Origin: Diplonema japonicum
Taxonomy: Eukaryota > Protista > Euglenozoa: Diplonemea
Assembly: GCA_964019335.1 (NCBI GenBank)
Contig: OZ025652.1
Location: 806,001 to 870,000 of the forward strand
Reading direction: 5' to 3'
Length of the DNA stretch: 64,000 nucleotides
Position 1 is the stretch's first letter, and each line of letters opens with the position of its first letter. Position numbers and translations under genes: made by a program. This document shows, one piece after another, positions 30,891 through 35,561 of the stretch. The notes beneath the pieces were generated by a model. The model was not told where the DNA came from. It saw only the letters and a program-made list of their open reading frames with translations, and made no database searches.

Positions 30891-31868
30891 ATGCGTTGCG
30901 GTACTGCAGTGATGATCGCCCTGCTGGCGGGGTGCGCGCAGGGTCTGTCTGAGGACTACATCAGGATGAACTCGAGGACGATGTTCAGGACCTTCAAGGC
31001 TGACTACAACAAGGCCTACAGCAGCGCTGCCGAGGAGGAGAGGAGGTTTCAGATCTTCACCAAGAATCTTTTGAAGGGAGCCCAGTACGAGAAGGAGCAG
31101 GCGATGGGGGCAACCTTCGGGGTGAACAGGTTCTCTGACCTGTCTTCTGAGGAGTTCAAGGTGTACCACAACCTGAAGGTTGTTGAGAAGGAGGGACCGG
31201 CCTACACCCCTTCCTTCTCTGAGATCGCTGCCCCCACAGAGGTGGACTGGAGGACAAAGGGAGCTGTGACCCACGTGAAGAACCAGGCTCAGTGCGGGAG
31301 CTGCTGGGCTTTCTCCACGACTGGAGGGATCGAAGGCCAGTGGTTCCTTGCAGGGAACACCCTGACCTCGCTGTCGGAGCAGGAGCTGGTGTCGTGCGAC
31401 AAGATCGACGACGGCTGCAACGGTGGTCTCATGGACAACGCCTTCAAGTGGCTGCAGCAGACACACAACGGGCAGATCGTGACGGAGGCCTCGTACCACT
31501 ACACCTCTGGCGACGGGTTCAGCGGGGTGTGCCACGACGTGTCCGGGAAGGCGGTGGGGGCCACCATCAAAGGCCACAAGGACATCGCACACAACGAGAA
31601 CGCGATGGCCGAGTTCGTCGGTCCCAGCGGGCCCCTCTCCATCGCTGTGGACGCCACCAAGTGGCAGACCTACAACGGAGGCATCCTCACCAACTGCTGT
31701 GAGGTCTGCACCCTTGACCACGGTGTCCTCATCGTTGGCTACGCCGCCGACTACTGGATCATCAAGAACTCCTGGGGGGCATCTTGGGGCGAGAACGGCT
31801 ACATCAGGGTCAAGAGGGGTGCCAACGAGTGCGGCCTCAACAAGTCCCCCTGCACCTCCGAGATCTGA
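30891..31868 (+). CDS. Cathepsin L-like cysteine peptidase (papain family C1A) with I29 prodomain
   Basis: ERFNIN-like EEERRFQIFTKN, plus QAQCGSCWAFS, DHGVLIVGY and WIIKNSWG. Confidence 0.95.
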   Translation: MRCGTAVMIALLAGCAQGLSEDYIRMNSRTMFRTFKADYNKAYSSAAEEERRFQIFTKNLLKGAQYEKEQAMGATFGVNRFSDLSSEEFKVYHNLKVVEKEGPAYTPSFSEIAAPTEVDWRTKGAVTHVKNQAQCGSCWAFSTTGGIEGQWFLAGNTLTSLSEQELVSCDKIDDGCNGGLMDNAFKWLQQTHNGQIVTEASYHYTSGDGFSGVCHDVSGKAVGATIKGHKDIAHNENAMAEFVGPSGPLSIAVDATKWQTYNGGILTNCCEVCTLDHGVLIVGYAADYWIIKNSWGASWGENGYIRVKRGANECGLNKSPCTSEI

Positions 31869-32195: not shown

Positions 32196-35100
32196 ATGGC
32201 CGACCCGTCTGGAGAGGTGACGCTGGAGGCAGCGAGGAAGCAGAAGATCCACAACCTGAAGCTGAAGACAGCATGCCTGGAGAACGAGGAGTTCATCCAG
32301 GAGCTGCACGTATCGGACTGGAGCGAGAACCAGAGGCAGAAGCTGTCTGGGGCGCACGAGAAGGCGCACGAGCTGCTGACTGCTGTGGAGGTGGGGACGA
32401 AGTGGAACCTTACTGAGGCGTACGACCTGGCGAAGCTGATGAGGGTGTGCGGGCTGGAGATGTCGCAGCGGGAGCTGTACAAGCCTGAGGACAAGCCGCA
32501 GTTCATGGACGTGATCGGGTTGAGGAAGCAGCTGGCGGAGTTGAAAAACAACAGGAACAAGACGAGGATCGTGTCCTTCACTGGGGTCATCGACAACGCC
32601 ATCACCAAAGTGGAGAAGGTGGAGGAGGAGCTCAGGAGGTCGCAGCTCGATGCAACCCAGCTCGCACAGGTCCCCGCCACCACCCTGAAGCAGATGGAGG
32701 ACATCATGAACGTCACGCAGATCCAGGCAGCCCTTACCTCTACGAACGAGCAGGTAAAAAAATAATAATAATGAAACTCACAAGGTGGCAACGCAAGTGT
32801 CGCAGCTGGACAGGGTGAACGAGATCCAGAACGTGGCGATGAGCGACGGTGAGATGCAGGTTGCAGAGGAGCAGTTCTGGACGAAGATCCAGCTTCAGGA
32901 GAGACTCATCGAGCTCATCAAGGACAAGTTCCGTTTGATCCAGAAGACAGAGGACGAGAACGCTCCCTTCAAGAAGGTGTGTGGGTTGTGAAAGGGAGGG
33001 AGGGAAGAACAATGTGCAAACATCAATGGTTGGGGCACTTTTTTCTTTTTTTTTACATGATGAGACCAATCACCCATTCTTCTTTCCCCAAATGAACAGG
33101 CACAAGTGTCTGTTGTGCTTCTACCCCTGGATTTGACAGTTTCTATTTTGTCTGAAATATTTTGAAAGGAACCATTGACACGCCTTCGGCAAGTGGTAAA
33201 CAAGTGATCAACAGGAGCGAACAACAGGAGTTGATTACCACTTCACTCAATTGCTGGTTTGTTTGTTGATGCTGTTGGCCATTGTGCTGGCAGCAAGTGA
33301 ACGTACTTCTGAGTCATGATTTACTGTTGTGTTGTCCTGTTTCTTTCCTTTTTCCGAAAAGGCTGTGATGACCAACAACAAACTCCAATGGCATTCCTCA
33401 TTTCTGACGAGGGAGGAGGCTGAGGGTGATGCTTCTGCTGTCCTCCTCCCGCCGAATGAGATGTGAGTACCTTTTCTGAGCCTTTTAGAAACGATAAGAG
33501 AAGGGTGGGGGATGGGGAAATGGAAGAGCGAAGTCTTTTGGCGACCAGCAGCAGAAGGGCAGGCTTGCTTCCTCGTAGCCATCGTGTTCTCATTACTGTT
33601 TGGGAGATGTGGAAAAAAGAAAGGCAACGAATGGTAAAAACCTGTGTTCTCTGAGAATGATGACAAACCACAGCTACTATCTGGACATCGCCCCTATACC
33701 TATACGATGCCTTCGGGCAAGTGGTAAACAACTCGTCCACACCTGACCATAGAAGAGAGAATAAAATAAAAAAAGATCCTTACCAACACAAGGCACAGGG
33801 GTGAATTAAACGCAGCTGATGTTCTTCGCGACAAACTGGTAAGCTCGGCTGTACCTGTCTCACCCAAGATGTACTTTGTGCTTTTGTAATACCTCACATG
33901 ATGAGACCAATCACCCATTCTTCTTTCCCCAAATGAACAGGCACAAGTGTCTGTTGTGCTTCTACCCCTGGATTTGACAGTTTCTATTTTGTCTGAAGAT
34001 CACATTTCCTCTTTTTTGCCCGACGTGCCTTCTCATTCGTGCACGAGTGCTGACAGCCCGCCCTCCCTCTCTGTTACTGCTTGCTTGATAAAACCCTTGG
34101 TTTTTGTGAATCCATTCAAGCCCTTGTATTCATGTCAAGCTTCACCCCTAAGTTGGACCTTGCTTATTTCCCTGATGCATCGCCCCACTTGAGTGACCCC
34201 TTTGGGCGACCAGCAGCAGAAGGGCACGCTTGCTTCCTCGTAACTGTCGTGTTCTCATTACTGTTTGGGAGAGATATGTGGAAAAAGACAGAAAAAGAGG
34301 AAGGAAGGGGTCTATCTGAGTCAAGTGGTAACAACTCGTGCATATCACATATGTTCGGCCAAAGGGAAGTAGCTTTTGTGGAATCAAGTATCTTTTCCTG
34401 AAATCGCCCACTTACACCACAATGAATCACTACCAACACAAACCACACCACTCACACAGATCTATGAAGTGCAGAAGAAGGCTAATCAGGAGACCTCGCA
34501 GATGAAGGACGCGAAGCGCAGGTTGAAGCAGAGGTGCGAGACTGACCTGAAGCACATCCACGATGCGATCCAGAAGGCAGACTTGGAGGACGCAGAGTCG
34601 ATGAAGAGGTTTGCGGCGATGAAGGTGTGAAAAAAGAAGGGAAAGTAAACAAAGAAAATCAAAAAAACAGGACAAGAGTGAGAGGTTCGTGAAGGAGAAC
34701 CTCGAGAAGCAGGAGGAGTGCTGGAGGAAGATCCAGGACCTCGAGAGACAGCTGCAGAAGCAGGGAACAGAGAGGTTCGAGGAGGTGAAGAGGAGGATCG
34801 AAGAGAACGACAGGGAGGAGAAGAGGAGGGTGGAGTACGCACAGTTCTTGGAGGTGGCTTCTCAGCACAAGAAGCTGTTGGAGCTGACTGTGTACAACTG
34901 CGACCTCGCGATCAGGTGCACGGGGTTGATCGAGGAGCTTGTGGCTGAGGGGTGCAGCGCGGTGAAGGCGAGGTACGACAAGACGAACCAGGAGCTATCG
35001 GACCTGAGGATCAGGGTGCACAAGGAGCACCTGGAGTACTTCAGGATGCTGTACCTCACGCTCGGGTCCCTCATCTACAAGAAGGAGAAGAGGTTGGAGG

Positions 35101-35561
35101 AGATCGACAGGACCATCAGGAGCACGCACATCCAGCTGGAGTTCTGCATCGAGACCTTCGACCCGAACGCGAAGAAGCACTCCGACCAGAAGAAGGAGCT
35201 GTACAACCTGCGGCACTCTGTGGAGGAGGAGCTGGGCCTCCTGAAGGAGAAGCAGGCAAAGGCGATGGACGACTTCAAGGAGTCCGAAGAGGCCCTCGAC
35301 GCTGCGGGGCACGAGTTCCAGCACCCTGTCGACGAGAACAACGAAGAGGTCCTCTCCAGGAGGTCAAAGATGGTCGAGTACAAGGTACAATATTACATTA
35401 AAATAGATTTAAAAAAACAAAAACAGGCACACTTGTCGAAGCAAGAAGAGGTTAAAATCGCGGCAGAGCGTGAGGAGATCAAGAGGGCGAAAGCTTTAAA
35501 AACTACACAGCAGTCGACCATCGCCTCCAATCCGAACGACCTTGTGAAGCCCTTGGAGTAA
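32196..35561 (+). CDS. PFR1: Paraflagellar rod protein 1
   Basis: LEAARKQKIHNLKLKTACLENEE...DWSE...TKWNLTE matches euglenozoan PFR1. Introns at 32754-32784, 32977-34459, 34625-34670 and 35385-35426. Confidence 0.95.
33057..33155 (+). ncRNA. Intronic box C/D snoRNA, copy 1; predicted target LSU G equivalent to yeast 25S G2395
   Basis: Box C atgatga (33057) and box D ctga (33152). D' atga (33092) is followed by hairpin acaggcac/gtgtctgt. Guide tcttctttcccc is complementary to conserved LSU GGGGAAAGAAGA, and the +5 rule points to the third G. Confidence 0.82.
33230..33313 (+). ncRNA. Possible additional box C/D snoRNA (degenerate C box)
   Basis: ttgatta ... D' ttga, 10-bp hairpin tgctgttggc/gctggcagca, C'-like agtgaac ... 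ctga (33309). No target recognised. Confidence 0.35.
33357..33486 (+). ncRNA. Intronic box C/D snoRNA; predicted target SSU G equivalent to yeast 18S Gm1572
   Basis: A 7-bp terminal stem aaaaggc/gcctttt closes box C gtgatga (33365) and box D ctga (33476). D' ctga (33404) is preceded by ggcattcctc, complementary to SSU GAGGAAUGCC; the +5 rule hits the first G of GAGGAAU. Confidence 0.85.
33545..33610 (+). ncRNA. Single-hairpin box-AGA (H/ACA-like) pseudouridylation guide, copy 1
   Basis: Lower stem ccagcag/ctgtttgg. Pocket gcaga...tcatt is complementary to the flanks of conserved LSU UGA-UU-UCUGC. AGA lies at 33605, 15 nt from the pocket. Confidence 0.7.
33657..33746 (+). ncRNA. Intronic box C/D snoRNA targeting the LSU GGUAUAGGGGCGA region
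   Basis: Box C atgatga (33657), box D ctga (33743). The 13-nt tcgcccctatacc is antisense to conserved LSU GGUAUAGGGGCGA, and cagctacta is antisense to nearby UAGUAGCUG. Internal tgcc-TTCG-ggca hairpin. Confidence 0.8.
33799..33872 (+). ncRNA. Single-hairpin box-AGA guide; predicted target LSU U equivalent to yeast 25S Psi2975
   Basis: Stems gggtga/tcaccc and gcagctga/tcggctgt. Pocket aaac + acctgtc pairs GACAGGU-[UA]-GUUU. AGA lies at 33867, 14 nt from the pocket. Confidence 0.85.
33898..33996 (+). ncRNA. Intronic box C/D snoRNA, copy 2 (duplicate of 33057-33155)
   Basis: About 100-nt apparently identical duplicate whose similarity ends essentially at the C and D boxes. Confidence 0.82.
34210..34275 (+). 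ncRNA. Single-hairpin box-AGA guide, copy 2 (paralog of 33545-33610)
   Basis: Same pocket and lower stem as copy 1; upper stem gggcacg/cgtgttc; AGA at 34270. Confidence 0.7.

Follow-up and report, generated by a model that had tools for sequence, protein, structure and literature searches.

Polycistronic clusters of snoRNA genes within introns are known from plants (rice and Arabidopsis) and from Chlamydomonas. The snoRNA clusters of trypanosomatids and Euglena are stand-alone, tandemly repeated and polycistronic, and each of their pseudouridylation guides consists of one hairpin and an AGA box. In the AGA-box RNAs of Euglenozoa, the target uridine is positioned 14-16 nt upstream of the AGA, and roughly 3 nt separate the AGA from the 3' end; in box C/D guides, the target is the fifth paired nucleotide from box D or D'. 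Box C/D snoRNAs associate with fibrillarin, Nop56, Nop58 and Snu13 and accumulate as discrete small RNAs. Intronic polycistronic snoRNA clusters are also found in Ostreococcus (PMC7671301). Introns are so few in trypanosomatids, a mere handful (PMC11613528), that intronic hosting is almost unavailable to them. No published description of diplonemid snoRNAs was found in a literature search.

The window examined here, a stretch of 64,000 nt from Diplonema japonicum, was found to contain a mixed cluster of box C/D and single-hairpin AGA snoRNA genes within the second intron of the PFR1 gene, as follows.

32785-32976, plus strand: PFR1 exon 2, present in spliced contigs of runs X1 and X2
32977-34459, plus strand: PFR1 intron 2, host of the snoRNA cluster, 1483 nt, GT..AG, with the exons joined at 32976|34460
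34460-34624, plus strand: PFR1 exon 3, located by exon-level protein searches and spliced contigs

The interval 32977-34459 is confirmed as a truly spliced intron of a diplonemid PFR1 gene. In assembled contigs of X1 and X2, which derive from related organisms, position 32976 is joined exactly to 34460 and the 1483 nt are absent, as are the neighbouring PFR1 introns of 31 nt (32754-32784), 46 nt (34625-34670) and 42 nt (35385-35426). Both runs are RNA-like; that they are RNA libraries is a guess based on their intron-less contigs. Protein searches run exon by exon identified the host: exon 2 encodes a sequence 100% identical across three PFR1 paralogs, the Pfam domain PF05149 spans the region of the intron 2 junction, and exon 4 shares 97% identity with the 73 kDa PFR protein of Diplonema papillatum and 75% with trypanosomatid PFR1D, versus 59-61% with the 69 kDa PFR2.

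Intron 2 encodes eight modules representing six snoRNA species, every one on the plus (host) strand. There are four box C/D types, namely CD1 (two copies), X, CD2 and CD3, and two single-hairpin AGA types, HA_A (two copies) and HA_B, together with short relics of CD3.

33055-33157, plus strand: CD1, box C/D; C 33057-33063, D' guide 33078-33089, D' AUGA 33092-33095, accessory antisense element 33134-33143, D 33152-33155
33182-33203, plus strand: first relic, 3' half of CD3 with its boxes lost; 22/23 identity to 33709-33731 by local alignment
33231-33313, plus strand: X, C/D-like; C-like box 33231-33237, antisense element 33252-33265, UUGA 33266-33269 overlapping UGAUGC 33267-33272, D 33309-33312
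33357-33486, plus strand: CD2, canonical box C/D; terminal stem 33357-33363/33480-33486, C 33365-33371, D' guide 33390-33403, D' CUGA 33404-33407, D 33476-33479
33409-33419/33442-33450, plus strand: internal stem of CD2, with C' UGAUGC at 33427-33432
33537-33610, plus strand: HA_A, single-hairpin AGA-box (H/ACA-like); lower stem 33545-33551/33596-33603, pocket 33552-33558 and 33588-33595, AGA 33605-33607
33652-33750, plus strand: CD3, box C/D; C 33657-33663, element a 33671-33679 followed by CUGG 33681-33684, element b 33688-33702 followed by ACGA 33704-33707, D 33743-33746
33799-33872, plus strand: HA_B, single-hairpin AGA-box; lower stem 33799-33804/33860-33865, pocket 33805-33811 and 33853-33859, AGA 33867-33869
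33896-33998, plus strand: second copy of CD1; C 33898-33904, guide 33919-33930, D' 33933-33936, D 33993-33996
34201-34275, plus strand: HA_A', a diverged second copy of HA_A; 89% identity, pocket intact, AGA 34270-34272
34322-34342, plus strand: second relic of the 3' half of CD3, surrounded by sequence without paralogs

The presence of the mixed cluster is confirmed. The original prediction had placed in a long intron at least four C/D units and three hairpins ending in AGA; the intron is spliced out as proposed, the C/D units (RUGAUGA...CUGA) are found on the plus strand at 33057-33155, 33365-33479, 33657-33746 and 33898-33996, and the hairpins, also on the plus strand, at 33545-33607, 33799-33869 and 34210-34272. 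Module X, at approximately 33231-33312, is an eighth module that had been overlooked. At least two sense-strand snoRNA genes in a spliced intron make an intron-hosted cluster, and here there are eight such modules with the exon joint present in two runs.

The modules stand out as sharp islands of 96-100% identity over 9-18 paralogous copies, covering 873 of the 1483 intron bases; the spacers between them are unique, and intron 2 as a whole is just 82-84% identical to the paralogous introns. Conservation begins and ends no more than 1-3 nt from the boxes, and the differences in contigs of organism A fall within spacers. Contigs from RNA-like runs span X with CD2, HA_A to CD3, and CD3 through HA_B to CD1. 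The paralogs resemble one another too closely to provide compensatory base changes. The place of the first relic, just upstream of X, is occupied by an intact CD3 in five paralogous clusters. Neither 34000-34204 nor 34273-34459, together approximately 390 nt of the intron, has a paralog in the genome, and both contain relics only. The segments 34000-34190 and 34287-34425 were considered as further snoRNAs and ruled out, being without paralogs and without convincing boxes.

Exact C boxes (AUGAUGA or GUGAUGA) and CUGA boxes are present in CD1, CD2 and CD3, and not cleanly in X. CD1 is present in 11 copies of 99-100% identity, conserved from 1-2 nt before the C box to the D box; the two copies in this intron form a 102-nt direct repeat of 100% identity with a spacing of 841 nt. 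Its D' guide forms 12 Watson-Crick pairs with LSU 2466-2477, lies 2 nt from AUGA and aims at G2468 (0/200 shuffles equal), and its accessory 10-mer pairs with the adjoining LSU 2454-2463 (5/3000 shuffles equal). CD2 has 9 full copies of 98-100% identity, all on contig C5, and its guide pairs with SSU 1841-1854 through 13 Watson-Crick pairs and one G-U pair, ending at CUGA and aiming at G1845 (1/200 shuffles equal); the pattern of CD2 C box, guide and D' had no match in a metagenome scan. CD3 has 18 copies of 98-100% identity. Its element b forms 15 bp with LSU 966-980 (0/200 shuffles equal), followed only by a weak ACGA that leaves the D' box ambiguous; a short distance away, LSU 999-1007 pairs with element a over 9 bp (37/3000 shuffles equal). 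X, with 10 copies of 96-99% identity, has a degenerate C box (AUGAUUA in 8 paralogs, mutated further to UUGAUUA in this copy), and its antisense element pairs with SSU 888-901 over 14 bp, of which 3 are G-U and 11 Watson-Crick, ending at UUGA and aiming at C892 (9/200 shuffles equal). X is the weakest module, because its box architecture is non-canonical, the candidates for D' and C' overlapping. Antisense elements of at least 10 nt end next to D or D' in CD1, CD2 and X, and pair better than shuffled sequences. The four D-box guides are orphans, with no significant target in SSU, 5.8S or LSU rRNA, the rDNA spacers, or U2, U4, U5 and U6.

Both AGA types have a pocket and an AGA right after the lower stem, and conservation among paralogs ceases 0-5 nt past the AGA. 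HA_B, with 10 copies of 99-100% identity, pairs on both sides of LSU U3097 (7+4 bp; 5/1000 shuffles equal), and 15 nt separate its AGA from the pocket top. The 18 copies of HA_A are invariant in pocket and lower stem, with changes restricted to the apical stem; the pocket forms 7+7(8) bp around LSU U2400, equalled by 0/1000 shuffles at fixed register and by 1/60 with registers scanned. The AGA of HA_A is 17 nt from the pocket top (16 without a bulged U), and the two-sided pairing of HA_A is borderline in spacing because this distance exceeds the 14-16 nt of the rule. Variants of HA_A in this intron are found at 33561 (an A) and at 34226-34247; the apical-stem variant of HA_A' is unique to that copy, and comparison of paralogs did not reveal clean covariation among the apical-stem variants. 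No matches to Rfam were found in the whole window at gathering thresholds. In a permissive search of 1.8 kb, HA_B matched the trypanosomatid family TB6Cs1H1 (RF01546) with E=0.0054 and 25.9 bits, which is below the gathering score of 40 bits that defines membership; HA_B has the same pocket letters and predicted target as that family and would function like it, but is not classed as one of its members. The remaining permissive matches (E above 2) were treated as noise.

Against rRNA of the organism itself, the guide elements achieve much better pairing than shuffled guides. The LSU rRNA of this organism is contiguous, as reported for diplonemids (PMC9082867). By position, SSU G1845 corresponds to yeast Gm1572, LSU G2468 to G2395 (the site of snR190) and LSU U3097 to Psi2975, which are the three yeast sites named beforehand; with yeast positions taken from the literature (PMC8307265, PMC8536666, PMC2275143), the same numbering offsets gave the expected base letters at 20 known yeast sites (8/8, 9/9 and 3/3). 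In yeast, snR57 directs Gm1572 and snR42 directs Psi2975 (PMC2275143, PMC8307265), and G2395 is not methylated (PMC8536666). Thus, CD2 resembles snR57 and HA_B resembles snR42 in having equivalent predicted target nucleotides, a functional equivalence only, and HA_B is a single AGA hairpin, unlike snR42, which is a two-hairpin H/ACA RNA. U2400, the predicted target of HA_A, corresponds to yeast U2327, which is absent from the listed yeast modifications, and the targets of CD3 and X could not be placed in yeast numbering by the letter tests.

The genome contains nine clusters of the same snoRNAs: four in PFR1, and five outside PFR1 on the same contig, of which four are directly upstream of cathepsin-L paralogs. 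All four PFR1 copies hold a cluster at the same site, intron 2, and the order of modules is shuffled between loci. With five clusters outside PFR1, most copies of CD2, CD3, HA_A and HA_B are non-intronic, the intronic share being 4/9 for CD2, 3/10 for HA_B, 6/18 for CD3, 7/18 for HA_A and 7/11 for CD1. Since the intron is one of nine sites of a shuffled cluster, PFR1 appears to be one of several interchangeable hosts that are polymerase II units. Intron 2 of PFR1 is thus very probably a host of polycistronic sense-strand snoRNA genes, and one interchangeable site among the nine. RNA polymerase II would transcribe the intron within the PFR1 pre-mRNA, from which it is removed by the splicing seen in the contigs of X1 and X2; snoRNP proteins may bind the C/D and hairpin-AGA motifs, and cuts in the unconserved spacers, for which endonucleolytic release is plausible, followed by exonuclease trimming, would free snoRNAs of approximately 75-125 nt. 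As judged from pairing, CD2 would guide 2'-O-methylation of SSU G1845, HA_B and HA_A would guide pseudouridylation of LSU U3097 and U2400, respectively, X may pair with SSU 888-901, CD3 may pair with LSU 966-980 and 999-1007, and CD1 may pair with the root of LSU helix 73 at G2468 while its second element clamps the adjacent rRNA segment.

The PFR1-intron cluster is an ordinary, newly seen example of the plant and algal layout, and reveals no new mechanism. As in the clusters of plants and green algae, C/D and H/ACA genes are mixed, head to tail, on the host strand of one spliceosomal intron of a protein gene, and the same clusters occur outside introns too. Unlike those clusters, this one belongs to a diplonemid (Euglenozoa), its H/ACA RNAs have the one-hairpin, AGA-box form, and the flagellar structural gene that hosts it exists as four tandem-like copies. 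With trypanosomatids and Euglena it shares the mixture of reiterated C/D and single-hairpin AGA modules and the bounding of C/D conservation by the boxes; the five clusters outside PFR1 resemble their stand-alone type, whereas four of the nine clusters are, unlike those of trypanosomatids, inside a cis-spliced intron. Thus, an intron-rich euglenozoan places trypanosome-style mixed clusters both between genes and in spliced introns, and the PFR1 locus bridges two known arrangements, the free-standing one of trypanosomatids and Euglena and the intronic one of plants and algae. It supplies six concrete snoRNA species, for each of which an rRNA target is predicted.

One alternative, rather improbable, accepts the snoRNAs as real but treats the copies in the PFR1 introns as passengers: the clusters outside PFR1, five in number, would yield most of the mature RNA, and those in the introns would be neutral segmental duplicates, decaying in this instance. 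The existence of those five clusters is compatible with such a history, as are the two CD3 relics, the mutated C box of X, the diverged HA_A' and the approximately 390 nt without paralogs in this intron; however, its CD1, CD2, CD3 and HA_B are identical or nearly identical to copies elsewhere and are located within a transcribed, spliced intron, so that the same RNAs would result if it were processed, and the cluster has been kept at one site in all four copies of PFR1.

The original prediction went further, proposing that the intronic location couples rRNA modification to PFR expression, such that snoRNA supply tracks the activity of a flagellar-rod gene. The occupation of intron 2 in every PFR1 copy and the predominantly intronic location of CD1 could be read in this way, but the five clusters of the same snoRNAs outside PFR1 (four of them by cathepsin-L genes), which account for most copies of CD2, CD3, HA_A, HA_B and X, and the PFR2-like genes on contig C63, which have no intron at the position of PFR1 intron 2, make it very unlikely. 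A dedicated regulatory link of rRNA modification to the flagellum is not supported, and the PFR1 cluster reveals no connection between ribosome modification and this organelle.

The prospect of a repeated non-coding or mobile element with box-like motifs and rRNA matches due to chance is negligible: the modules are indeed multicopy and shuffled in order, and a plain count of rRNA-complementary oligomers of at least 10 nt (sense 16, opposite strand 10, shuffle mean 5.6) is only about twice the shuffle mean, with the opposite strand above the mean too, which is weak evidence and led to reliance on the box-anchored tests, but the guide matches abut box motifs exactly and surpass shuffles, three guides reach conserved sites of which two are modified in yeast and the third is a yeast snoRNA binding site, a covariance model of a trypanosomatid snoRNA family matches HA_B, and conservation stops at the snoRNA boxes with neither terminal repeats nor open reading frames.

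Within the reading of intron 2 as one of several interchangeable snoRNA hosts, a more tentative and on balance doubtful suggestion is that CD1 and CD3 are two-element 'clamp' snoRNAs, CD1 being the diplonemid equivalent of yeast snR190, a box C/D snoRNA that chaperones early pre-60S particles (PMC8536666). RNAs of the snR190 type have a second rRNA-binding element that 60S assembly requires. Like snR190, CD1 has a D'-linked antisense element predicted to pair with the root of helix 73, directed at the same nucleotide (G2468 = G2395), and a second antisense element; unlike that of snR190, the second element would pair right beside the first site (LSU 2454-2463) and not with domain I. If the suggestion were true, chaperoning of the helix 73 root would be ancient and no peculiarity of yeast, and CD1 and CD3 would serve rRNA folding no less than methylation. 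In both RNAs, the two elements address neighbouring LSU segments in collinear antiparallel order, 2454-2463 with 2466-2477 for CD1 and 966-980 with 999-1007 for CD3.

The PFR1 product was compared one exon at a time. The largest exon 3' of the long intron (34689-35558) matches the Pfam profile Flagellar_rod (PF05149) at 1.3e-87, and the short exon immediately 3' of this intron corresponds to the beginning of the profile. Among named relatives, the "73 kDa paraflagellar rod protein" of Diplonema papillatum is closest (97% identity), compared with 75% identity to trypanosomatid PFR1D proteins and 59-61% to 69 kDa PFR2 proteins; thus, the gene is a diplonemid PFR1. The rDNA, on contig C119 of the organism's own genome assembly (G000), is a tandem unit of 6825 bp with a contiguous LSU rRNA of 3480 nt. 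Such an arrangement is reported in diplonemids and not in kinetoplastids or euglenids (PMC9082867), and it supports diplonemid identity. Partial SSU rRNA-like matches (28-300 bits) outside this array, on contigs C37, C78, C80, C18, C34 and C22, are either dispersed rDNA fragments or lookalikes.

PFR1 intron 2 (32977-34459) starts with GT, ends with AG and is spliced: two public runs of related organisms, X1 and X2 (exons about 97-99% identical; presumed to be RNA), have contigs in which position 32976 is joined to 34460 and exactly 1483 nt are missing. Three further PFR1 introns, all GT..AG, are absent from the same contigs, and the loss of all four gives these contigs the look of cDNA.

Further PFR1 introns absent from X1 and X2 contigs
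32754-32784, 31 nt
34625-34670, 46 nt
35385-35426, 42 nt

The original prediction had contrasted short introns with a single long one, correctly for PFR1 (31, 46 and 42 nt versus 1483 nt). Contigs of two other runs, X5 and X6, contain the intron sequence itself at about 100% identity. The ORF finder runs on in frame across the short fourth intron (35385-35426), which is nevertheless removed in X1 and X2 contigs.

All seven snoRNA units predicted in intron 2 were recovered, and a C/D-like module, X (about 33231-33313), is an addition to them. With the entire intron as query, paralogous stretches (82-93% identity) were found on the same contig only, and module-level searches of the whole genome found no module copies outside that contig, C5.

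Genomic copies of the six snoRNA species
CD1 (box C/D): 11 copies, 99-100% identity; 7/11 intronic
X (C/D-like): 10 copies, 96-99% identity; 4/10 intronic
CD2 (box C/D): 9 copies and a fragment, 98-100% identity; 4/9 intronic
CD3 (box C/D): 18 copies, 98-100% identity; 6/18 intronic
HA_A (AGA-box hairpin): 18 copies, 89-99% identity; 7/18 intronic
HA_B (AGA-box hairpin): 10 copies, 99-100% identity; 3/10 intronic

Inter-module spacers gave no alignment to paralogous clusters in module-by-module searches, and a 14-mer footprint resolved eight conserved islands set apart by unique sequence.

Conserved islands in PFR1 intron 2
33038-33156
33232-33332
33360-33486
33535-33620
33639-33761
33773-33872
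33895-33999
34205-34272

Conserved sequence begins 1-2 nt 5' of C boxes and ends at D boxes or just past AGA boxes; such sharp edges are the pattern that should be expected of discrete small-RNA genes in neutral spacer. Differences between the genome and contigs of organism A, a relative among the public runs, lie in spacers, at 33348, 33359, 33761-33774 and 33882-33894. Constraint on the modules is demonstrably much stronger than on the spacers. No paralog was found for 34000-34204 or 34273-34459. Short relics of the CD3 3' half occur at 33182-33203 and 34322-34342, the place of the former being taken by an intact CD3 in other clusters. The 3' part of CD3 (AAGUGGUAAACAACUC, 33718-33734) and the 5' part of X (33228-33243) show 94% complementarity over 16 nt; since CD3 lies only about 35 nt 5' of X in five clusters, the two could pair in the precursor.

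In their predicted pairings, the guides are shown to fit the organism's own rRNA (shuffle figures give the fraction of shuffled guides or pockets pairing as well as the real one). CD2 is canonical: its ends close in a terminal stem of 7 bp, its boxes are GUGAUGA and CUGA, and UGAUGC lies in an internal stem-loop. Flush with the D' CUGA, the guide pairs with SSU 1841-1854 (13 Watson-Crick pairs plus one G-U; 1/200), the fifth paired position being G1845. CD1 (AUGAUGA...CUGA, D' AUGA) pairs with LSU 2466-2477 through 12 Watson-Crick pairs (0/200), with G2468 as predicted target, and its second element (10 nt, 33134-33143) pairs with LSU 2454-2463, 2 nt off on the rRNA (5/3000). In CD3 both the C and the D box are perfect, and there are two antisense elements: one of 15 bp with LSU 966-980 (0/200), followed by a weak ACGA, would indicate G969, and one of 9 bp with LSU 999-1007, followed by CUGG, would indicate U1002, a nearby second match as good arising in 37/3000 shuffles. 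Both elements of CD1 and of CD3 are collinear with and antiparallel to their two rRNA segments, a layout with the geometry of accessory pairing. A stretch of 11 nt in CD3 (33674-33684), overlapping the element antisense to LSU 999-1007, is sense-identical to LSU 2416-2426, which may be chance. X is the weakest of the modules: it pairs with SSU 888-901 over 14 bp including 3 G-U, adjoining UUGA (9/200), the candidates for its D' and C' boxes overlap each other, and its C box is AUGAUUA in paralogs and UUGAUUA in the present copy. The four D-box guides had no significant target in rRNA, rDNA spacers, U2, U4, U5 or U6.

The HA_B fold comprises lower and upper stems separated by a 7/7-nt pocket and is followed by A-AGA, with 15 nt from pocket top to AGA box; the pocket pairs 7+4 bp around LSU U3097 (5/1000). 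HA_B gave the sole small-E Rfam match, to the trypanosomatid AGA-box snoRNA TB6Cs1H1 (RF01546; E=0.0054; 25.9 bits, the gathering score being 40), whose consensus pocket letters are those of HA_B, so that a common target is probable. In HA_A the lower stem and pocket are invariant in all 18 copies, the apical stem alone varying; the pocket pairs 7+7(8) bp around LSU U2400 (0/1000 at fixed register, 1/60 with registers scanned), and the box distance of 17 nt (16 without a bulged U) is slightly beyond the usual 14-16 nt.

Positions were converted to yeast numbering by fixed offsets, verified by letters at published yeast sites (the table of PMC8307265; C2392, G2395, U2417 and U2421 in PMC8536666; the 1566-1571 motif, G1572 and G1575 in PMC2275143), and the three rRNA assignments made earlier (SSU G1572, LSU G2395, LSU U2975) all hold.

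Yeast equivalents of predicted targets
SSU G1845: yeast Gm1572 (snR57), letters 3/3
LSU G2468: yeast G2395, letters 9/9
LSU U3097: yeast Psi2975 (snR42), letters 8/8

The HA_A target corresponds to yeast U2327, absent from the listed yeast modifications, and letter tests yielded no yeast position for the CD3 and X sites. Yeast G2395 is a predicted target of snR190, yet it is not methylated by snR190, which serves at that site as a chaperone of folding and carries another antisense element (PMC8536666). CD1 is like snR190 both in site and in having such an element.

PFR1 is present in exactly four genomic copies, all on contig C5, and intron 2 of each holds a shuffled form of the snoRNA cluster. 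Two PFR2-like genes (L036 and L037, G000:C63:262858-276570) are 57-82% identical to PFR1 exons; their exons 2 and 3 are fused, and thus they have no intron at the position of the cluster. The same six snoRNA species also form five clusters outside PFR1.

Non-PFR1 snoRNA clusters on contig C5
570.9-572.2 kb
577.4-579.3 kb
599.4-600.8 kb
603.0-604.5 kb
643.2-644.1 kb

Four of them have a cathepsin-L paralog downstream in the same orientation, with a gap of about 170 nt, and one sits after a ybiA-like fragment. The mixed cluster in a spliced PFR1 intron, with its modules and rRNA pairing, stands as originally described, but the proposed coupling of rRNA modification to PFR expression is not supported: with five clusters elsewhere and many copies non-intronic, snoRNA supply is not tied to PFR1, and the PFR1 intron represents one among several interchangeable sites within transcribed regions. 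The gene immediately upstream of PFR1 encodes a cathepsin-L-like cysteine protease (30891-31868, + strand). Paralogs of this protease gene (C5 569.8, 576.3, 601.9, 642.0 and 663.5 kb) each adjoin a snoRNA cluster or a PFR1 copy, indicating that cathepsin, PFR1 and cluster were duplicated together.

Plant intronic clusters and trypanosomatid polycistrons are released by spacer cuts and exonucleolytic trimming, and by analogy release from the diplonemid intron may be similar. snoRNP proteins would assemble on the boxes while these still belong to the intron or pre-mRNA, spacers would be cut endonucleolytically, and exonucleases would trim to the protein-bound boxes, freeing the mature RNAs. For non-intronic clusters, processing would be the same, with the intergenic portions of long polymerase II transcripts as precursor. 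One metagenome scan for the CD2 pattern (C box, guide and D') gave no match, and a search of the available literature found no paper on diplonemid snoRNAs. The PFR1 arrangement belongs to a known class, intron-hosted polycistronic snoRNA clusters; what is new is their presence in a lineage without earlier description of them.

Linkage was also seen among snRNA genes, three loci having U6 and U4 0.2-1.5 kb apart and another having U5 and U6 at most 1 kb apart.

Linked snRNA genes in G000
C52:445913-446308
C51:52299-53734
C8:558073-559750
C109:29229-30312
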